IMG/VR virus record: IMGVR_UViG_3300028416_000004
Coordinates: 62,001-126,000 of that record
Strand: one strand, 5' to 3'
DNA: 64,000 nt
Shown here: one piece after another, positions 10,419-40,660 of the stretch
Layout: each line of letters begins with the position of its first letter
Numbering within the stretch: the first letter of the stretch is position 1
Program-made: the position numbers and the translations under genes
The notes under the pieces: model-generated
Database searches by the model: none
What the model was told of the DNA's origin: nothing
What the model saw: the letters and a program-made list of their open reading frames with translations, nothing else

Positions 10419-12053
10419 CTAAATACATTCCATATAATTATCACCTAAAGAATAATCAATTTCAAACACCATATCATTATATTTTGATAATATTTTTTGA
10501 ATTTCTCCTATTAAATTTAACTCTTCTGGATGTATATCTAAAACAAAAGAATCAAACACTTGAAACATAAATGATGACTTGTGACTTTCTAGCCATTTTT
10601 TTAATTCATTTAATTTATCTACCACTATTTCTGCAGCTGTAGATTGAACGTAATTATTAAATGCAGCATATGTCTTATTAGGTTTTATTAAAGTACCAAA
10701 AGGGTTTATTATATACCCCAATTCTTTATAAACATTATTAATATAATCAGAAGTATTTAAGATTGGATTTAAAAATTCTTTTATATTATTTAAAGCTTCC
10801 TCTACATTGATGCCTTCTATTTTAGAAATTAAACTTTTTATTAACGTATCACCTCCTCCATACAATATAGCATGATTAATGTCCTTTGCAACTTTTCTAT
10901 GAAAAGATGTTACTTCAACACTTCCTCCCAACATAGCTTTAGCTGTATTGTAATGCAAATCAGAGTTCATATTTTTAATTATAAATTCTTCATCTCTAGA
11001 TAAGTACATAGATAACCTTGTTTCAAAAGACTTATAATCAAATACTACAATTTTACCACCTTTATGTCTGGGGATAATTTCTTTTCTTATAGGACTATCT
11101 TTAGGTATCATTTGTGGATTAAACGAATCTACACAATTTATCCTACCAGTTATAGTTCTTTTATCTGAATATCTTAACATTATATATTTCTTATCATTTT
11201 CCCAAGTGCTCCTTACTCCTTCTGGAATTTTAAAATTTGAATTAAAATATATTTTATTTGTAGATAACCAAGAAGTTACTTTATCTTTAACTGTTTGCCT
11301 TATACAAGAATTTAACTCATCTTTAGTTAGAGTGTGTTTACTTATTATGTCATTCATCATCATAGGTATAAACCTATAAACATCTTTATTTAAAAAGATT
11401 TTTATAAAATCTTTAGGTTCTATATGATTAGAATATTTAGACCAAAAAACATTTTCCAAAGTCATAACATTTCTAACTTCATCGACATAAACATATTTAA
11501 TAATATTTTGATAACTAAATAAAGTACATTCTATTTTATTGATTAATCCTGTAAAAATCTTCTTATAATCTTTGCCTACATATTCTAAACTAGAAACACT
11601 TATAGCATAAGTATTTGAATCATTGTAAATATAGCATACATTTTTATGAAAATATATAAAAGACCTAGTTTTATTATTTATATTATTTAGAAAAAAATCT
11701 CTTATCTCTCCATCTAAAATAGCATCATAAGTTATAATGTTTTTATTGAAAAACTTTTTCATAGAAAATTCAAGAAACATTTTGATGTCTGTTTTGTTTT
11801 TTCCATCCTTTTCTGTTAAACTAAAAGTCCAAAATAAATTATCTGATATTTTAGGATTATCAATAGATTGTTCTGGGAAAATTTCTCTAACTTTATTCCA
11901 ACCTATTATTAAAGTAGGTAAATCTTGCTCTTCTGTAAAACTAATAGTTTCTATTAACTCTAAAGCAAAATTATCATAATGGACATTTATATACTCCAAA
12001 TCATCAGAAGAATAAGGGAGTATTTTACAAATTTTTATCAAACTATTAAGCAT
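10419..12053 (-). CDS. polA: Divergent family A DNA polymerase (polymerase domain)
   Basis: TGRI, NPQMIPK, motif A FDYKSFETR, DLH, motif B RKVAKDINHAILYG, NNYVQSTAAEI and motif C QVFDS. Confidence 0.85.
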   Translation of the reverse strand: MLNSLIKICKILPYSSDDLEYINVHYDNFALELIETISFTEEQDLPTLIIGWNKVREIFPEQSIDNPKISDNLFWTFSLTEKDGKNKTDIKMFLEFSMKKFFNKNIITYDAILDGEIRDFFLNNINNKTRSFIYFHKNVCYIYNDSNTYAISVSSLEYVGKDYKKIFTGLINKIECTLFSYQNIIKYVYVDEVRNVMTLENVFWSKYSNHIEPKDFIKIFLNKDVYRFIPMMMNDIISKHTLTKDELNSCIRQTVKDKVTSWLSTNKIYFNSNFKIPEGVRSTWENDKKYIMLRYSDKRTITGRINCVDSFNPQMIPKDSPIRKEIIPRHKGGKIVVFDYKSFETRLSMYLSRDEEFIIKNMNSDLHYNTAKAMLGGSVEVTSFHRKVAKDINHAILYGGGDTLIKSLISKIEGINVEEALNNIKEFLNPILNTSDYINNVYKELGYIINPFGTLIKPNKTYAAFNNYVQSTAAEIVVDKLNELKKWLESHKSSFMFQVFDSFVLDIHPEELNLIGEIQKILSKYNDMVFEIDYSLGDNYMECI

Positions 12054-30094: not shown

Positions 30095-30562
30095 ATGAAT
30101 GAAGAAGAAAAAAAGAAAAAAGTTAACTCAATTTTAAAACAAACTAAAAGAAAACTTTTAAAACCCAGAAACCAAATAAAGAAAATTAAATATTTACATG
30201 CTCAATCTTATAGGATGAGCAAAAATACAACTTGGCCTGAAAGAGAGTTTGAATCTATCCTCAAAGAAATGAATATAGAATATGAATCTCAAAAAATACT
30301 TAAAGGTAAGATATATGATTATTATATACCATCTGCTAATATGTTATGTGAAGTTGATGGTGATTATTATCATGGAAATGAAGAAAAATATGAAACTTTA
30401 AACGAAATGCAAAAAAAAGCGAAACAAAACGATAGATATAAAGATATCATTGCAAAAGGCATGGGTTACGGAATGTTTCGCATTTGGGAATCTGAACTTA
30501 AAAATAGTAGAGATTTAGCAAAAGAAAGAATAATAAACGAAATCTTAATTAAGAAACTCTAA
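30095..30562 (+). CDS. Vsr/DUF559-like (PD-(D/E)xK) endonuclease, probable free-standing homing endonuclease
   Basis: T.PE..F..IL, YDYYIP, EVDGDYYHG, ND..KD..A...GY...RIWESE; on the strand opposite its neighbours. Confidence 0.85.
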   Translation: MNEEEKKKKVNSILKQTKRKLLKPRNQIKKIKYLHAQSYRMSKNTTWPEREFESILKEMNIEYESQKILKGKIYDYYIPSANMLCEVDGDYYHGNEEKYETLNEMQKKAKQNDRYKDIIAKGMGYGMFRIWESELKNSRDLAKERIINEILIKKL

Positions 30563-33500
30563 TTCAAATTCAGTTGTTTCATAATGTTCTTTCAAAAAGT
30601 ATTGTAAAGAAGTTTGTCTTATATTTGGGTCTATATTATCTATACTTCTCTTAAACGCTTCTCTTTCGCCTATTAAAATTCCCATTTTTTTTGCTCTAGT
30701 AAGTCCTGTGTAAATAAGATTTCTATAAAGCATTATATAATGTTGGTTTAATATCGGAATTATTACTATCTTAAACTCACTACCTTGAGATTTGTGTATA
30801 GTTATAGCATATGCTAATTCTATTTCTATTATATTAGACCTTTCATATCGTACAAGTTTAGTTTTTTTAGAGTCACCATAATTAATAATCAAACTATAAT
30901 CTTTAGTATCAATTTTAGTTATATAACCAATATCACCATTAAAAACATTTAAATCATAATTGTTAGCTGTTTGTATAACCCTATCTCCTTCTCTAAAAGT
31001 TCTTTCTCCTATAGTTATTTCTTTTTTGTTTTCAGATTTTGGATTTACAGCAACTTGTACTCTCTTATTAATTTCTTTAGTTCCAACAGAACCTTTATTC
31101 ATAGGTGTTAATATTTGTATTTCATTATCTTTACCCATATATTTTTCTATGGTTTCACTATATAATTTAACTATCATATCAATAGCATTCAAGCCATATT
31201 TAAGTGTTGAATTTGGCTCATTTTGATATTCTAAATTCATAGATGAATCAATAAACATACAATCACTTCCATCTTTCCACATTTTAGGATTTGAAATTGG
31301 AGTTTCTACATTTGGAGTTTCACCTTTATTTATAGTATGTGCATAAGTAATAATTTTTGATTTTTCAGCTTGTCTAAAAACTTTTTTCAAACTAAACACC
31401 TTAACACATTGACTATTAATTAAATCTGATATTAAATTTCCTGGGCCAACAGATGGTAATTGGTCTTTATCTCCAACTAAAACAATTTGTGTATTTGGCG
31501 ATATAGCTCTAAAAAATGAAGAAGCTAACCTAATATCAATCATAGAGGATTCATCTAAAATAATAAAATCACATTCCAGCATATCTTTTTCAGATTTTCT
31601 AAAATTACCATTACCTGCATCCCATTTTAATAATCTATGTATTGTTTTTGATTCTGCACCTATAACTTCAGACATTCTTTGAGCTGCCCTTCCTGTTGGT
31701 GCTGCTAAAAGTACTTTTTTACCTAAAGATAAAAGTATATCATAAATAAACTTTACAGTAGTGGTATTATGAGTAACGACATAATTACCTAAAACAAATC
31801 TTTTATTTCCATCAATTTCAAAACCGTAATAATCTCCTTCTCCTTTATCTACCAACTTAAAACCAGAATGTAAATGATTTTTATTTTGATTATTCATTGC
31901 TTTTTTTCGCTTAATTTTAACAGGTACTCTTTGTAAATTTCCACTTATATTAATTCTATAAACTTTACAACTATAATAACTACCATCTTCTCTTTTCATT
32001 GTAGCAATCTTATCGGTTATAGATGTTTTAAAACCAAGACTAGAACTTAACTCAAATATATCATATGCTAATTTTTTATTTTTTTGAGTTATTTCATATA
32101 TACCACTACCAGTTAAATGACCATCCGAATCTATCAAACCTGCAAGTAAACTTAAACGATGCTCCCTGGAGTTAATTAGATGCTCATTAGGTATATGCTT
32201 ATTATTAAATACATTTTCTTTTTTTAATAATGAATATAAAGACTTTTTTCCACCTGTAACAATTAAACTAGAAGCTCTATTAAGATTTTCTCTTAATCTA
32301 AATTTATAACCATTGTTATCTGACCATTCTCTAGAATAATCTATTATTTCTTTATCTATATTTGTTATTATAAATGTTTTTGAGTTACTATGACCATCAC
32401 CTAACCACAAACCTAACAAATAGGGGTCTAAATAAGTTTTCTTTAAAGGATATTCAACTCCTACACTATACTGCATTAATCTATGTCTGTTTCTTTTACT
32501 AACTTTCAAATAATCCTTAATAGATATATCTACAACATCACCTTGAGAATATTTTTTACCATTAATTGTTATATCTCTCTCTTTAGTGTTATAAACAAGA
32601 GAAAGTATATGAGATTCATTACATCCCCAAATTTTTCCATCATTAGAAATTACATCATACATTCTCTCTTTACCTCTCGCTAAACTCAAAACTTTTCTTG
32701 GAGTAGAATCATCTCCCATTAACAAATCTCCTTCTTTAATGTTTTCCACCTTATTTTTAGTCCCATCAAACATCAAAACAGTTGTACCCTTCTTTAAACA
32801 TTTGCCAACGCCTGGACCTCCTGTTAAAATAGACAAACCATTAGAAACAACTCCTATAACTGAATCATATTGTTCTTCACTAAGTTTTATTTTAGAATTA
32901 GACAACATTTTATCTAACCTTTCTTTTAAATCACTTGTATTGTTAGCATATCTTTTCTTTGATAATCTAACCACCTTTTCTGCTACATACATTTCATCAT
33001 AATACAAATCTCTAGAATAAAACCTTTTTTGTTCTCTTATTTTATCTTTAGAGAAATTTATAGATACTATCTTCTCTTCTAATTCCTCTTTATTTAAAAT
33101 ATATTCTATTAATGTATTAACTTCAATTCCAATTAATTTCCTAACTCTTTCTTTTGTTTGTTTTTCAGTTAAATAACAGTGTCCATCAGATTGATTATTA
33201 GATAAAATATGATGTACAGCTGCAGTAACTCTTTCTTCACTTTTTTCATTGAAACCTAAACTCATAGCTAACTTATCAGCCATTGAAAATCCAAACCCAA
33301 CTATATCTGTAGCCAATCTATATGGATTATTTTTTAAAGTTGAAATAGAATCTATACCATACTCTTTGTAAATTTTAACAGCCGAAGAAGTGGCAACCAT
33401 ATGGTCTTGCAAGAAAATCATAATATTATTCATTTCCCTATTTTCTTTCCAACTCTCCTTAAGCACTTGTAATTTACTCCTATTTATTCCCTCTACTTCA

Positions 33501-33880
33501 ATTATTCTATCAATGTTATTCCTAAAAATATCTAAAGCTTCATCACCGAAATAATTAACTATCTTTTTAGCTGTAACAGGTCCTATCCCTGGAAAAAATC
33601 CTGAACTTAAATACTTAACAAGAGATTCTGTTGTTGCTGGAGGCATTTCTTGACAAGAGTTAGTATTAAATTGTTTTCCAAACCTAGCATGTTTAGACCA
33701 ATAACCTTCAAATTTCATTGTAACACCTTCAAATACTTTTGGTTGATTTATTGTTACGGTTATATTATCTTTAATGTCTTTATTATCAACAACTTCAACA
33801 CTCAAAACTCCATAACCATTAATTGGATTATGAAACTTAACTCTTCTTATAATCCCAACAAAGGAAGTTATATTATCCAT
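30545..33880 (-). CDS. recD2: RecD2-like SF1B helicase, intein-containing
   Basis: RecD2 N-terminus (GIGPVTA HhH, NPYRL), Walker A TGGPGVGK|T, APTGRAA, DESSM, VGDKDQLPSVG, YAITIHKSQGSEF and YTGLTRAK. Confidence 0.95.
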   Translation of the reverse strand: MDNITSFVGIIRRVKFHNPINGYGVLSVEVVDNKDIKDNITVTINQPKVFEGVTMKFEGYWSKHARFGKQFNTNSCQEMPPATTESLVKYLSSGFFPGIGPVTAKKIVNYFGDEALDIFRNNIDRIIEVEGINRSKLQVLKESWKENREMNNIMIFLQDHMVATSSAVKIYKEYGIDSISTLKNNPYRLATDIVGFGFSMADKLAMSLGFNEKSEERVTAAVHHILSNNQSDGHCYLTEKQTKERVRKLIGIEVNTLIEYILNKEELEEKIVSINFSKDKIREQKRFYSRDLYYDEMYVAEKVVRLSKKRYANNTSDLKERLDKMLSNSKIKLSEEQYDSVIGVVSNGLSILTGGPGVGKCLKKGTTVLMFDGTKNKVENIKEGDLLMGDDSTPRKVLSLARGKERMYDVISNDGKIWGCNESHILSLVYNTKERDITINGKKYSQGDVVDISIKDYLKVSKRNRHRLMQYSVGVEYPLKKTYLDPYLLGLWLGDGHSNSKTFIITNIDKEIIDYSREWSDNNGYKFRLRENLNRASSLIVTGGKKSLYSLLKKENVFNNKHIPNEHLINSREHRLSLLAGLIDSDGHLTGSGIYEITQKNKKLAYDIFELSSSLGFKTSITDKIATMKREDGSYYSCKVYRINISGNLQRVPVKIKRKKAMNNQNKNHLHSGFKLVDKGEGDYYGFEIDGNKRFVLGNYVVTHNTTTVKFIYDILLSLGKKVLLAAPTGRAAQRMSEVIGAESKTIHRLLKWDAGNGNFRKSEKDMLECDFIILDESSMIDIRLASSFFRAISPNTQIVLVGDKDQLPSVGPGNLISDLINSQCVKVFSLKKVFRQAEKSKIITYAHTINKGETPNVETPISNPKMWKDGSDCMFIDSSMNLEYQNEPNSTLKYGLNAIDMIVKLYSETIEKYMGKDNEIQILTPMNKGSVGTKEINKRVQVAVNPKSENKKEITIGERTFREGDRVIQTANNYDLNVFNGDIGYITKIDTKDYSLIINYGDSKKTKLVRYERSNIIEIELAYAITIHKSQGSEFKIVIIPILNQHYIMLYRNLIYTGLTRAKKMGILIGEREAFKRSIDNIDPNIRQTSLQYFLKEHYETTEFELEFLN
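31766..32800 (-). mobile_element. Intein (345 aa) with LAGLIDADG homing endonuclease, in RecD2 Walker A
   Basis: Begins CLKKGTTVLMFDG after GPGVGK and ends VVTHN before T(+1); block B CNESHIL; LLGLWLGDG and LLAGLIDSDG motifs. Confidence 0.95.
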
Positions 33881-35583: not shown

Positions 35584-36063
35584 ATGAAAGAAAATAAATT
35601 AATTTTAGGTTTTGAAAACACAAAAGAACTATTTAGTTCTATTCTTGGATTAAAAAATTCTTTCATAAATTTCCTATTAGCTATGATTACAGCCTCAACT
35701 TCATTTATTACTCAATACATTTGGGATGATGCATCAGCTGTATATTTTATGTTATTCTTAATTATTGTAGATGCTTCCACTGGAATATGGAAATCTATAA
35801 AATATAGAACTTTTAGTAGTAGTAAGTTACCTAGAGTTTTAGTTATCTCAATAATATATGTTTTAATGCTTGCTATTAGTTGGAACGCTGCAAAACACTC
35901 AACTTTATTCATTTGGTTACCTGGAATGGTTTATGGAGGTCTTATTGGAACTCCATTAGTGTCAATATACGAAAACTTTGCAGAATTGGGATATGTACCA
36001 AAAGGTTTATTGTATGATATTAAAGAAAAAATAAAACATTACTTCAACAAAAAGCAAAATTAA
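35584..36063 (+). CDS. Holin (phage holin 4-1-like)
   Basis: Several transmembrane segments, LIIVDASTGIWKS, S.KL and SIYENFAELG motifs; ATG at 35584 preferred; TATTTAT at 35543-35549. Confidence 0.78.
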   Translation: MKENKLILGFENTKELFSSILGLKNSFINFLLAMITASTSFITQYIWDDASAVYFMLFLIIVDASTGIWKSIKYRTFSSSKLPRVLVISIIYVLMLAISWNAAKHSTLFIWLPGMVYGGLIGTPLVSIYENFAELGYVPKGLLYDIKEKIKHYFNKKQN

Positions 36064-38333
36064 GATATTTTTCTAAATTGACAACCATCTTGAAACTTTA
36101 ACCAACCTTGTTCTTTTTTGAATTTAGTTATATATATACTTCCCTCTTCAATTAAATCACTTATTCTATCATAAGCATCAGCCCAAACGACCATCTTAAC
36201 CACAGAACCTCCATCACTCAACTCTAAAGACCAATATTTTTTACCTTTTATAGAATACTTTTCTTGAACACCCTTTATTACAAAATAATAGTATTTATTT
36301 GGATTCTCAAATTCCGTTACAGGTTCTATATTAAAATCATATTTATCCATAAAATCTTGCTTTAACTTAGATATCTTATTAAACAAATTCAAATCTAAAC
36401 TACAAACTTTTATAAAATCTTTATATTTAACCTCTTCAGGTGTTGGTTCATATTTATCTTTTAAGTTTTCTTCAATAATATCAAATCTATTTTGTCCAAA
36501 CAAATCCATTTGCATAGTATTACTTTTCATTTTATACTTACGAAATTCCATTAACTCTTCTCTTGAACTAGACCAATCATCAAAAACACCAGCATTTAAA
36601 CAAGCTTCAAAGTTAGCTTTATTAAATTTACTAAATTGATGCATAAAAAACTTATCTTTATCAATGTCAGATACCCCAATAGACTGAAGCTCTTCAAATG
36701 CTATCTCACCCATTCCATTAATGCTAGAAAAGCCCATAAGTATAGTGTTTTCGTCTAACATTCCCCATTCCCATTTAGATTTTCTGTTGGGGGGTAAAAT
36801 CTTTATACCTTTTGTAAAAGATGTCATAATAGCTGAAGATAACCAAGATTCATCATCTTTAGCGTGATTCAATAAAGCAGTATAAAACTCTGTAGGGTAA
36901 TATCTTTTCATATACAAAGTTTGCATCGCAACATAAGAATAACTTACTGAGTGACTTCTGTTGAACGAATATCCCAAATACTTAACTAACCACTCCTCTA
37001 TATCTTTAACTTCATTCTCTTCTAAACCTTTCGCTTTACAACCCTCTTTAAATTTATCCCAAAGTTTTAAATATTCTTTATAATTCTTATTTGAAGATTC
37101 ACTTTCTTCCAACTCTTCTCCAGATAATGTCTTTTTTATAACCTTAGAAGCTTTATCCATAACTTTTCTTAAATTATCACCTTCCCCTAAAGACATTCCA
37201 GCCAATTCATGAGCAATAAACATTAATTGCTCTTGAAAAATTAATACTCCATTTGTATTTCTTAATAAAGGCTCTAAAGATGGATGAACTAAATCAATAG
37301 ACTCTGGGCTTTTTTTATTCCTTATATACTCCTCATGAGCACCTACACCCATAGGGCCTGGTCTATATAATGCATTGGCAGCAACCATTTCTTCAAAGTT
37401 TTCTGTATGCATATTTTTTATAAGCTTAGACATTCCTTCGGATTCAAACTGAAATACTCCTTGATTATTACCACTTCTTAACTCTTCAAAAAGTTCAGGA
37501 TTATCTAAATCAACATATTTAACTTCTTCAGAAATATCTATACCTCTATTTTCTTTTACTAATTTAATGGATTGTTTTAAAACGTTTAAAGTAGTCAAAT
37601 TAAGTCTGTCTAACTTTAGTATTCCCAAGTCAGACAAATCTTTACCACTACCAGATTCTTGAAAACCAGATACAGTAACACCTTTTACTATATTTACTGG
37701 CATATATTCCCAAACTGGCCCTGGTGTAATAACTATACCAGCAGCATGTTTACCTAAATTTCTAACTTGACCTTGTAGAGTTAAAGTGGTATCTATAATT
37801 TTTTTATTTGATGGATTTTGTATCCAACTTTTGACTACTTCAGATGATTCTGGTGAATTTGGATGTTCTCTTAACCAATCTTTTAAGTCTCCTTCATATT
37901 TCATAAAAGATTTTGGCATTTCTTTAGTTACAGCAAAAACATTCGAATCAAAACCTGCATCTTGACCAAAAGCTTTAGCCACATCTTTAAGGCACCCTTT
38001 TTCGTTAAAAGTAGAAAATGTAATTACAGGAAAAACACACTCTTTTCCATATTTATTATAAAGAAACTCATCAGTTTTAACATCTGAACCAGTTTCGAAG
38101 TCTATATCAATATCAGGAGGAGAATTTCTAGCTGGATTTAAAAATCTCTCAAAATATAAATCAAACCTTAAAGGGTCAATTTTCGTAATATCAAGACACC
38201 ATGAAAGAAGACTTCCTGCTGCAGAATTGTGTACACCTATTCCCTCAATATTATAAGAATGTGTTTCTTCAACAGTTAAATCATGAACTTTACCTTTGTA
38301 ATTTTTAAATTTTCTACTTTTTAGTTTTGCCAT
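36060..38333 (-). CDS. dnaE: DNA polymerase III alpha, C-terminal part, with N-terminal split-intein IntC
   Basis: SAAGSLLSWCLDIT, FERFLNP.R..PPDIDIDF, GKHAAG, GVFQFES, ALYRPGPM, YSFNRSHS and a C-terminal OB fold. Confidence 0.95.
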   Translation of the reverse strand: MAKLKSRKFKNYKGKVHDLTVEETHSYNIEGIGVHNSAAGSLLSWCLDITKIDPLRFDLYFERFLNPARNSPPDIDIDFETGSDVKTDEFLYNKYGKECVFPVITFSTFNEKGCLKDVAKAFGQDAGFDSNVFAVTKEMPKSFMKYEGDLKDWLREHPNSPESSEVVKSWIQNPSNKKIIDTTLTLQGQVRNLGKHAAGIVITPGPVWEYMPVNIVKGVTVSGFQESGSGKDLSDLGILKLDRLNLTTLNVLKQSIKLVKENRGIDISEEVKYVDLDNPELFEELRSGNNQGVFQFESEGMSKLIKNMHTENFEEMVAANALYRPGPMGVGAHEEYIRNKKSPESIDLVHPSLEPLLRNTNGVLIFQEQLMFIAHELAGMSLGEGDNLRKVMDKASKVIKKTLSGEELEESESSNKNYKEYLKLWDKFKEGCKAKGLEENEVKDIEEWLVKYLGYSFNRSHSVSYSYVAMQTLYMKRYYPTEFYTALLNHAKDDESWLSSAIMTSFTKGIKILPPNRKSKWEWGMLDENTILMGFSSINGMGEIAFEELQSIGVSDIDKDKFFMHQFSKFNKANFEACLNAGVFDDWSSSREELMEFRKYKMKSNTMQMDLFGQNRFDIIEENLKDKYEPTPEEVKYKDFIKVCSLDLNLFNKISKLKQDFMDKYDFNIEPVTEFENPNKYYYFVIKGVQEKYSIKGKKYWSLELSDGGSVVKMVVWADAYDRISDLIEEGSIYITKFKKEQGWLKFQDGCQFRKIS
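38226..38333 (-). mobile_element. Split intein C-fragment (IntC, 36 aa)
   Basis: MAKLKSRKFKNYKGKVHDLTVEETHSYNIEGIGVHN followed by S(+1); blocks F and G present. Confidence 0.93.
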
Positions 38334-38454
38334 TATTATTTTCTTTATGTTCTTGTTTTGCTTTTCTATTTTATTAATTAATCAAAAATTTCACAAACTA
38401 AACATATTATATAAATCATAAACGAATAATTAATTAAAAGATTTTCTCATAATT

Positions 38455-40554
38455 CTAATATTTATTTATATCAACAATATCATCTTCTTCAGTTAAATTT
38501 TTAGCTTCCACCCACCCACGATTTTCAGTAAGAATTTCATGGTCAAGAGTACATTCTATCACTCTACCATCATCAAATTTAAGTTCAATAATCTCTTCTT
38601 GAATATCATACTCCAATGTATCAATAACTTTTCTTTCATCTCCGAATGCATCAATTACCTTATCTCCAATTTCAATTGTATCTATTGGAACATACATTCC
38701 ATCAGCCATTTTTACTCTACTTCCTGGCAAAAAACAACCCCTCCCAGGGCCAACTTCTATATCATTATCAGCACAAAATCTTATTAATTCCCAAACAACC
38801 AGAAAATAATCTAACATCTTCTTATCTCTGATGACATCCAATTCATAATCTAATCTCTTTCTATATTCTTCAATTTTCTTTTCATCTATTTTTATTGGAC
38901 CTTTCTTTTGATATAAACTAAGTTTTTGGTTTAATTTGGCATGCGAAAGTCTTCTAATTATCTCTTCAGTATCTTTTGTTTTAAAAAATTCAAAAACATC
39001 GTTAGTAGGTTTATATTGAGGATATTTTTCTACATTAGTTTCAAAATCAAAATTACATAAAGAAGATATTTTTTCACTATTAATCATACATATTCTAACA
39101 AAATCTTCTTCATAATCATATGCAAAGGATTCATTCATTTCGAATATATCAGATTCTGAAGGATAATACATATCTCCATTTTCTTTTGTTCTAGCTTTTT
39201 TGATAGGTCTTTTTTGATTAATTGATATCAATACATCTTGAAGAACTTTTTCATTCTTTTTAGGAAAGTAAACATCGTTTGAAACAATAATAGCCATATT
39301 ATACTTGTTAGACATATTTATAATAAATTTATTATATTGTCTTTGTATCTCATTGTCTTCTAGAGATATTTCGGCTATATAATTTCTTCTTCCGAAAAGG
39401 TTAAGCATTTTAACTAAATATTCTTCAGCTTGTCTGTATTTACCCATTTGTAAATATTTAGATATAGTACCATGTTTTGAACTGGTAGTTAATATCAAAC
39501 CTTCTTTTCCTTCTAAAATCCACTTAGTTTTTATTCTTGGAACTCTATAAAAACCTTCAGCAAATGAAAGATAATTGATTTTATTTATATTAACATATCC
39601 TTCATCATTTAAAACTATTATTTTTTGCAAAACATTAATATCTTGCTCTTTTGGTTCATATTGACCACCTATACTATCATTTAAAAAGAATTCACAACCA
39701 ATTATAGGTTTAATATCTTTTGATTTACATTTTTGATAAAACGAAAAAGCACTAGATAAACTACCTTTATCAGTTAAAACTAAAGTTTTATGATTATACT
39801 CTTTAGCCATACTTATATAATCACTTGTGGAGCCAGCACCTTCTAAAACAGAATGATAAGTATGTAAGCCGAAATTAACCATTGAATGGTCTATTGGAAC
39901 AGAGCCATTTTTTTGCTTCCATTTATTTATAATTTCTAATTCTGAACTTTTTGAGTCTAAAAATTCTAAAACATCTTCTCCAAACCCTAATGCACCAACT
40001 CTTCTTAACTCAAAAAAACATTTAGCTAAAGCTTCAACGTCAATTAAAGCATCGTGGGCATCTTCAAATGTTTTATTAAAAAGTATTTTATGGAGTTCTG
40101 TTAAAGTTGGTGGTTTTAAACCGTTTTTGCCTTGTATTCTACAAAAGTTTACTGTTGAATTCATAGTACATATATGAGTAATGTCTCTCATATAATTTTT
40201 CATGTTCAACCTATAAAATTCACATGCAGTTACCTTGTTATCGAAACTAATATTATGAGCTACTAAAAATTTTGATTTCTCTATATCTTTAATAAACTCA
40301 TTTAAAGCTTGTTCTAAAGGTACACCTTCAAAGTTGGCTCTTTCATTAGTTATTCTATGAATCCTAATACTTTCTTCAGGTATTATAAATTTATCTGGCT
40401 TTATGATTCTGTTATTTGAACCAATCTCCACACCATTAATATCGTAAACCTTCCATGCTAACTGAACTATTCTTGGCCAATTATTAACATCGGTTATGGG
40501 AGCACTGAAATCTTCTGGCAACCCTGTTGTTTCTGTATCAAATATTATAAACAT
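38455..40554 (-). CDS. dnaE: DNA polymerase III alpha, N-terminal part (DnaQ-like exonuclease + PHP), with C-terminal split-intein IntN
   Basis: FDTETTG, VAHNISFD and AHDALID DEDDh motifs; PHP motifs HTYHS, LTDKG, KPIIGCE; YFLVVWE...GPGRG; start 40554 preferred because TATATTTG overlaps the ATG at 40563. Confidence 0.95.
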   Translation of the reverse strand: MFIIFDTETTGLPEDFSAPITDVNNWPRIVQLAWKVYDINGVEIGSNNRIIKPDKFIIPEESIRIHRITNERANFEGVPLEQALNEFIKDIEKSKFLVAHNISFDNKVTACEFYRLNMKNYMRDITHICTMNSTVNFCRIQGKNGLKPPTLTELHKILFNKTFEDAHDALIDVEALAKCFFELRRVGALGFGEDVLEFLDSKSSELEIINKWKQKNGSVPIDHSMVNFGLHTYHSVLEGAGSTSDYISMAKEYNHKTLVLTDKGSLSSAFSFYQKCKSKDIKPIIGCEFFLNDSIGGQYEPKEQDINVLQKIIVLNDEGYVNINKINYLSFAEGFYRVPRIKTKWILEGKEGLILTTSSKHGTISKYLQMGKYRQAEEYLVKMLNLFGRRNYIAEISLEDNEIQRQYNKFIINMSNKYNMAIIVSNDVYFPKKNEKVLQDVLISINQKRPIKKARTKENGDMYYPSESDIFEMNESFAYDYEEDFVRICMINSEKISSLCNFDFETNVEKYPQYKPTNDVFEFFKTKDTEEIIRRLSHAKLNQKLSLYQKKGPIKIDEKKIEEYRKRLDYELDVIRDKKMLDYFLVVWELIRFCADNDIEVGPGRGCFLPGSRVKMADGMYVPIDTIEIGDKVIDAFGDERKVIDTLEYDIQEEIIELKFDDGRVIECTLDHEILTENRGWVEAKNLTEEDDIVDINKY
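38458..38736 (-). mobile_element. Split intein N-fragment (IntN, 93 aa)
   Basis: CFLPGSRVKMADG (block A) ... ECTLDHEILT (block B) ... GWVEAKNL, then stop. Confidence 0.93.
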
Positions 40555-40660
40555 ATGATACAAATATAATTAGTTTTCACTTTAATTCAAAAGAAAGCTA
40601 ATAAAAATTTAATAATTAATTCTGGGTGGTGGTTAATTATTTTATTGAAAATATTAAATT

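Follow-up and report, generated by a model that had tools for sequence, protein, structure and literature searches.

How a virus whose replicative DNA polymerase gene is broken in two could still make a complete enzyme is the question raised by a locus in IMG/VR virus record IMGVR_UViG_3300028416_000004, a phage record of 232,514 bp that stems from seawater and is estimated to be 88% complete. The locus lies in a 64,000-nt stretch of that record (bases 62001-126000; hereafter the window, whose own numbering is used unless another locus is named) and consists of two adjacent genes on the minus strand that together form the only DnaE (DNA polymerase III alpha subunit) of the record, in two pieces. 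As far as can be read from the sequence, the full enzyme is most likely joined after translation by a functional split intein. The element is very probably a naturally split class-1 intein of HINT type with a Cys1/Ser+1 pair, located at GPGRG/SAAGS (the slash marks the splice junction) of an exonuclease-bearing phage DnaE, acting by trans-splicing and standing at a stage at which an endonuclease gene has been lost.

The two DnaE genes and their intein halves

The N-gene (38455..40563) fuses a DnaQ-like 3'-5' exonuclease, a PHP domain and the first part of the polymerase III alpha palm, in frame, to the N-terminal intein fragment (IntN). Its open reading frame (ORF) comprises 702 amino acids (aa) from a TTG at 40563 and 699 aa from an ATG at 40554; the latter is the likelier start, because a 98%-identical database protein is 699 aa long. 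Pfam matches cover RNase_T (residues 6-183), PHP (233-399) and DNA_pol3_alpha (538-610, corresponding to the first 66 positions of that family), followed at residues 608-697 by Hint-family matches which, for a half domain, fall below the curated cut-offs. The gene ends with a TAG stop at 38455..38457. The C-gene (36060..38333; 757 aa) opens with the C-terminal intein fragment (IntC) and continues with the rest of the palm, the fingers, HhH and OB, as reflected in matches to the remainder of DNA_pol3_alpha (8-244), the finger domain (248-398), HHH_6 and OB. The polymerase motifs PDIDIDF (38097..38117, in the palm), GKHAAG and YRPGPM are all intact. Everything that the original prediction had described of the two genes and the residues at their junction is present, on the minus strand: the genes are out of frame and 121 bp apart, and the spacer between them (38334..38454) contains stops in all three frames. 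No ORF of at least 40 aa is listed inside these 121 nt, which confirms that an endonuclease gene is absent from between the halves.

At the break, the last five N-extein codons, GPGRG (38737..38751), make up the first half of GPGRG-SAAGS, a conserved DnaE motif, and are directly followed by the Cys1 codon (38736..38734), so that the N-gene ends ...VGPGRG/CFLPGSRVKMADG...ECTLDHEILTENRGWVEAKNLTEEDDIVDINKY before its stop. The 93-aa IntN (38458..38736) carries Cys1, a block B of the form C62-T63-L-D-H66 and an acidic tail, ...LTEEDDIVDINKY. The 36-aa IntC (38226..38333) has a basic N-terminus, MAKLKSRKFKNYKGK, a block F, VHDLTVEETHSY, and a block G, GVHN, with His35 and Asn36. The C-gene accordingly starts MAKLKSRKFKNYKGKVHDLTVEETHSYNIEGIGVHN/SAAGSLLSW, the C-terminal stretch of IntC being ...VHDLTVEETHSYNIEGIGVH35-N36/S+1. 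Ser+1 (38223..38225), the first residue of the C-extein SAAGSLLSW, would be the nucleophile of transesterification. The catalytic set is complete (Cys1, T63/H66, D18/H25 of IntC, H35-N36 and Ser+1) and strongly conserved: 42 aligned N-fragments show no variation at R-G/C1-F2, C62, T63 and H66, 19 contiguous relatives have an invariant V-H-N, and HN/S is kept in all 62 split loci that were compared. Joined to each other, GPGRG and SAAGS give the uninterrupted G(L/C)GRGSAAGS found in the DnaE of Tenacibaculum phage Larrie and Bacteroides phage BS-TP1.

The element shows the marks of a class-1 intein, namely, Cys1, the block B Thr-x-x-His, the His-Asn of blocks F and G with Ser+1, and an in-frame insertion whose removal restores a conserved motif. 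It also shows those of a split intein: the halves lie on separate translation units (TAG stop, spacer, new ATG), they measure 93 + 36 aa with the break at the homing-endonuclease insertion loop, and they are complementary in charge. A recount gave exactly the figures first proposed, with 25 D/E against 10 K/R in IntN, and 7 K/R and 0 D/E in the first 15 residues of IntC. Residues and junction thus support the predicted naturally split, canonical class-1 intein at GRG/S.

Two further features of the junction region were observed. Cys62 (38551..38553) stands directly before the block-B Thr (C-T-x-x-H) and is kept throughout the family described below; a structural role or one as redox partner of Cys1 are both possibilities. 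A terminator-like, G+C-rich hairpin with a T-run (38735..38752, minus strand) falls exactly on the GPGRG/CF junction inside the coding sequence, and is probably a side effect of the Gly/Pro/Arg codons and of the TGT TTT TTG that comes after them.

In the proposed mechanism, the two adjacent genes would be translated separately, and the acidic 93-aa IntN and basic 36-aa IntC would associate electrostatically and fold into one HINT domain. Splicing would then follow the standard class-1 chemistry in four steps: Cys1 undergoes an N-S acyl shift, a transesterification to Ser+1 follows, Asn36 cyclises and an O-N shift completes the reaction. The intein would be released and GPGRG ligated to SAAGS, yielding a contiguous exonuclease-DnaE of about 1327 aa.

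Fold, selection and the case for splicing

Matches in the PDB at the sequence level are scattered among HINT proteins. For IntN they comprise the NrdJ-1 intein (best, partial), a Clostridium bacterial intein-like domain and PI-SceI, and for IntC the C-terminal blocks of the Mtu RecA and MJ0781 inteins. The tail of the N-gene and the head of the C-gene align collinearly, end to end, with mini-inteins that occupy this DnaE site in contiguous form and span 123-137 aa; one of them (locus L021) measures 129 aa, that is, 93 + 36. The break aligns with the short linker of the mini-inteins, which is the position occupied by the endonuclease domain in versions of 372-416 aa. An AlphaFold2 model of L021 shows an all-beta HINT fold (predicted local distance difference test score, pLDDT, 97.8) that superposes on the gp41-1, NrdJ-1, Mtu RecA, DnaB and Npu DnaE inteins and on the bacterial intein-like domain with template modelling (TM) scores of 0.8-0.9, at sequence identities to the solved inteins of 28% or less. 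A HINT fold is accordingly predicted for the intein of the window, whose IntN is approximately 64% identical to that of L021.

IntN is under strong purifying selection. Compared with relative L008, its nonsynonymous and synonymous substitution rates (dN and dS) are 0.059 and 1.00, giving a dN/dS of approximately 0.06, and 91 extein codons directly upstream have a dN of 0.45; at the protein level, IntN is 88% identical to that of L008, versus 48% for the N-extein. Trans-splicing is favored because the splicing residues are conserved and because of this purifying selection.

Among the alternatives, the one that survives best, improbable as it is, holds that the halves no longer splice, and that they serve as a non-covalent dimerisation module or belong to a decaying DnaE pseudogene pair in a phage replicated by its own family-A polymerase or by the replisome of the host. 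A gene for the former does lie at 10419..12053 (minus strand; Pfam DNA_pol_A, 94 bits), so that DnaE is not the sole polymerase of the phage; a family-B polymerase was looked for and not found. Decay is nevertheless at odds with the intact polymerase motifs PDIDIDF, GKHAAG and YRPGPM, with the dN/dS on IntN and with the presence of the sequence in RNA libraries. Intein-less split phage genes can function, e.g., the NrdA of Aeh1 cited by Dassa et al. (PMC2677866), and the DnaE genes of Larrie and BS-TP1 are split nearby without Cys1 or His-Asn, but at the window locus every catalytic splicing residue is kept, with little or no variation at these positions across the family. Larrie and BS-TP1 were themselves considered as members of the family and rejected, their DnaE being split after ERFLN without those residues.

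Several points weigh against splicing and the history proposed for it, and should be set beside the evidence above. The structure model is that of a relative and not of the two pieces in the window. The lower dS of the intein (1.0 vs >2, the latter saturated) hints at lateral transfer, which is only suggestive. A metatranscriptomic contig across the junction (X12, described below) is compatible with co-transcription of the genes, and carry-over of DNA is possible. The 28-nt local alignment behind the endonuclease relic discussed in the next section was matched by 24 of 2000 shuffles (p ~0.01), a modest significance. Finally, the family-A polymerase and the 88% completeness of the record weaken the case that replication depends on the spliced enzyme. 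That part of the original prediction therefore stands halfway: dependence is plausible, as this is the only DnaE in the record, but another polymerase is encoded as well.

The intein family at GRG/S and the history of the split

The original prediction saw an independent split event at this site and called for a search for contiguous or split inteins at GRG/S in phage DnaE. Both kinds were found. A full HMMER search with 20 extein residues plus IntN against 1.84 billion cluster representatives gave 3429 matches at E ≤ 1e-3 and 381 at E ≤ 1e-10, and the counts of representatives given here cover the best 150 matches. Of these, 83 are DnaE N-fragments (G.GRG/CF) with a stop 88-121 aa after Cys1, and 27 continue past that stop; where the C-terminal junction of the latter could be located, they are mini-inteins of 123-171 aa or endonuclease-bearing inteins of 372-416 aa, ending ..VHN/S..GS. 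In IMG/VR, 213 related viral contigs were found, 80 of which were fetched for a comparison of gene arrangements. As many as 62 of the 80 loci are split with an adjacent IntC gene: 14, including that of the window phage, have IntC directly downstream behind a spacer of <260 nt, one (L017) has a spacer of 432 nt, and 47 have spacers of 700-2515 nt. Seven loci hold a contiguous mini-intein, five have IntN fused to an ORF of 319-374 aa that overlaps the IntC gene, and six remained unassigned, four because the contig stops short of the IntC region and two because no Cys1 junction was located. A pattern scan had seemingly left 35 loci without an adjacent IntC, as if their halves were uncoupled; a profile search showed the absence to be an artefact of the pattern. 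In the five fused loci (L067, L081, L088, L091 and L093), the reading frame of IntN runs on into the ORF, whose last 16-88 nt are shared with the IntC gene; the arrangement resembles an intermediate with the endonuclease joined to IntN alone.

Contiguous inteins at GRG/S also occur in cultured viruses, namely, in Lactococcus phage 949 (ORF116, with LAGLIDADG motifs), Bacillus phage G (gp329) and Methanobacterium virus PhiF1 (ORF57). Together with metagenomic mini-inteins such as P0103 and L021, these share with the window intein the junctions ..GRG/C(F/L)...VHN/SA.. and homologous blocks; unlike it, they are single polypeptides that would splice in cis, and are either mini-inteins (123-137 aa) or carry a LAGLIDADG or other endonuclease domain. 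Split homologues appear in the databases only as 'DNA polymerase III subunit alpha', 'PHP domain-containing protein' or 'intein/homing endonuclease'. Within the phage collection, megablast gave no match to the locus, and no cultured phage there has the exact gene pair. Judged on its sequence relationships, the window intein is one allele of a large and widespread family at this exact phage DnaE site. With the same junction and stop position in 83 of the 150 representatives and in 62 of the 80 loci, its occurrence goes well beyond chance.

DnaE genes are also broken in other ways. Gordonia phages Terapin and Suzy were rejected as relatives, since their genes are split far earlier, in the PHP domain and not at GRG/S. 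In Larrie (L004:3198-6778) and BS-TP1 (L005:3213-4946), the N-gene has a tail of approximately 50 aa ending ..EEGDTIIKY, and the C-gene head of Larrie is short and Lys-rich. The tail and the head are similar to the end of IntN and to the beginning of IntC; they may be degenerate remnants of intein halves whose present role is that of a non-covalent zipper. In Bacillus phage G (L014:3914-7886), gp329 contains its contiguous intein at GRG/S and then ends after ERFLNPTRG..; gp330 is a GIY-YIG homing-endonuclease gene and gp331 a further DnaE piece, so that an intein and an intein-less fracture occur in one gene.

Most split relatives bear a free-standing PD-(D/E)xK endonuclease gene between the halves. 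In L018, whose IntN is 77% identical to that of the window, this gene encodes 344 aa and overlaps the IntC start with its last 20 nt, and L025 has a 275-aa homologue between its halves; both genes match the PD-(D/E)xK family Tn7_TnsA-like_N, L025 above the curated cut-off. L008 keeps only a 75-aa C-terminal relic. In the window, the halves are adjacent on the same strand as in such fractured genes, and no free-standing endonuclease separates them; the spacer has 18 codons (38314..38370, minus strand) that read NRKAKQEHKENNNGKTKK before a stop and overlap the first 20 nt of the IntC gene, the same position and overlap as the endonuclease ends of L018 (...YRKAREKHKELDNDTIKK) and L008 (...YKKARNKHKELNNGEIKE). 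It is probable, and graded no higher because the nucleotide similarity is only modestly significant, that the spacer retains a relic of a lost endonuclease gene. Gain or loss of this gene is supported independently by L025 and L028, which are approximately 98% identical; a clean 1015-nt indel sets them apart and contains the PD-(D/E)xK gene that lies between the IntN and IntC genes. Deletion of the endonuclease gene in the lineage of the window would have left the 121-nt spacer.

This bears on the claimed independent split, in which the window phage would have broken a contiguous intein on its own. The spacer differs in length and sequence from those of the other endonuclease-less relatives (47-241 nt), so that the endonuclease may have been deleted specifically in this lineage. 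The split itself appears older than the lineage, because 62 of the 80 loci and 83 of the 150 representatives have the same break point, IntN length (mostly 88-97 aa) and IntC start, and because the closest relatives, L018 and L008, share the split and have an endonuclease gene or what is left of one between the halves. With this large split family at the same site and contiguous forms in cultured phages, an independent event is not borne out and has very little probability left; of the split and the endonuclease loss, only the loss may be the lineage's own.

The weakest alternative is that an indel or a misjoin interrupted, in silico, what is really a contiguous mini-intein such as that of L021. 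It draws on the equal total length (129 aa) of contiguous mini-inteins at the same site in related phages and is effectively refuted. The junction is identical in L006, an IMG/VR contig that comes from another sample and matches at 99.95% over 9.6 kb, the entire junction included, and it is intact in Logan contigs of other runs that bridge the spacer without an indel (X5, 37605-39934, with 0 differences; X4, 36967-40563; and X12, 755 nt from an RNA library, 37979-38733). The spacer is 121 nt of AT-rich non-coding sequence with stops in all frames and not a single frameshift, and dozens of divergent loci keep both the stop position and the start with Met-Ala/Lys-Leu-Lys. The spacer folds no better than shuffled sequences (z = +1.0), a hairpin like the one that Dassa et al. 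described for gp41-7 was not found upstream of the C-gene, and promoter-like sites are no more frequent here than expected by chance.

The neighborhood contains other inteins. The sequence YSFNRSHS (36948..36971, minus strand; C-gene residues 455-462) is uninterrupted in the window and represents an empty site, YSFNR/SHS, that is occupied by a second split intein in L006 and in L008. L006 (9590-10178) reads ...GYSFNR/CLTENHKVISEERGE... (also written YSFNR/CLTENHKVISEE...), followed by a 74-aa ORF, and run X4 holds both forms of the site, with loose ends at 36956 and 36967. In L008 (6010-12894), a 52%-identical relative, DnaE is distributed over four genes with three split inteins, at GRG/S, at ERFLNPERN/C...VHN/SSPDIDIDF and at YSFNK/C...VSN/SHS; small ORFs lie between its DnaE pieces, some of which look like endonuclease relics. 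Elsewhere in the window, a RecD2-like helicase gene (30545..33880, minus strand) contains a contiguous LAGLIDADG intein (~31769..32800) in the Walker A loop, with the junctions GVGK/CLKKG...VVTHN/TTT and Pfam matches to Hom_end_hint, Hom_end and LAGLIDADG_3.

Relation to known split inteins and implications

Split inteins in fractured genes were described from ocean metagenomes by Dassa et al. in 2009 (PMC2677866), comprising gp41-1 to gp41-9, NrdJ-1, NrdA-2, IMPDH-1 and DnaE-1, DnaE-2 and DnaE-3. In their model, a free-standing endonuclease invades the intein gene and fractures the host gene; the endonuclease is later lost (step III, exemplified by locus gp41-7), and the halves may finally uncouple, as in cyanobacteria (PMC2677866). 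The window locus resembles these fractured genes in many respects: the host is a phage-type replication gene, the halves are adjacent on the same strand and split at the endonuclease loop, IntN is acidic and IntC basic, and the intein is of class 1 with Cys1/Ser+1 and has relatives with a free-standing restriction-fold endonuclease between the halves. NrdJ-1 is also the best match by sequence in the PDB, and gp41-1 is among the best fold matches. A difference is that the window lacks the endonuclease gene; its closest counterpart is the endonuclease-less gp41-7 of step III. Solved inteins of fractured genes are 23% or less identical to the modelled relative in structural alignments.

Three DnaE loci with split inteins at non-cyanobacterial sites, one with an extra in-frame IntC, were reported from the Global Ocean Sampling (GOS) data (PMC2677866). 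The middle piece of L008, which consists of an IntC, a 34-aa extein and the IntN of the next intein, resembles the description of DnaE-1. GRG/S may be one of the three reported DnaE sites. No DnaE allele of the GRG/S group is among the characterised split inteins tabulated in PMC11766414 (Table 3), and the literature on site names and junction peptides of DnaE inteins gave no match for it. An identical characterised intein, which would have taken away the novelty of the allele, was thus not found, and the GRG/S family is apparently uncharacterised biochemically so far. The proposal that Cys1/Ser+1 forms a new pair has to be given up, as this is not new chemistry: gp41-1, gp41-8, NrdJ-1 and IMPDH-1 use the same pair (PMC11766414, Table 3).

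With the cyanobacterial Ssp and Npu DnaE inteins, the window intein shares a polymerase III alpha host, a naturally split class-1 organization, a 36-aa IntC and charge complementarity. The cyanobacterial intein reportedly occupies the site Y/CFNKSH (Wu et al. 1998). This site is intact in the window as YSFNRSHS, which upholds the earlier statement that the two sites differ; the YSFNR/SHS site occupied in L006 and L008 lies 3 residues downstream of it. The cyanobacterial inteins furthermore use Cys+1, whereas the window has Ser+1, and their halves are encoded at distant loci, whereas those of the window are adjacent. Sequence similarity between them is marginal (E 0.2-1.2), and the window intein does not belong to the cyanobacterial DnaE split intein family.

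The principle of fractured-gene split inteins has been known since 2009, and knowledge of the mechanism is not changed by this locus. A wider proposal, which is possible but held with considerable doubt, is that the GRG/S family is among the most widespread phage split inteins and in flux in phage populations, that its members are kept because the polymerase needs them or because splicing provides control, and that they could serve as a fast tool orthogonal to gp41-1, NrdJ-1, IMPDH-1 and Npu DnaE. If true, endonuclease-less split inteins would persist since the host polymerase needs them, or as a control point, with the invariant Cys before the block-B Thr and Cys1 as a candidate redox switch. 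Presence/absence polymorphisms between near-identical strains indicate that the elements are still moving. Low sequence identity makes orthogonality to the split inteins in use plausible, and from a practical point of view the family offers many natural, strongly conserved and small Cys1/Ser+1 pairs (93 + 36 aa) as reasonable candidates for orthogonal ligation. For the biology of the family, a near-complete 232-kb marine phage genome documents a late stage on the proposed way from contiguous to split intein, with the endonuclease gone and the halves still adjacent. Its earlier stages (mini-intein, endonuclease-bearing intein, fractured gene and relic) are seen in close relatives at the same site, which makes this an unusually complete natural series at one insertion site.

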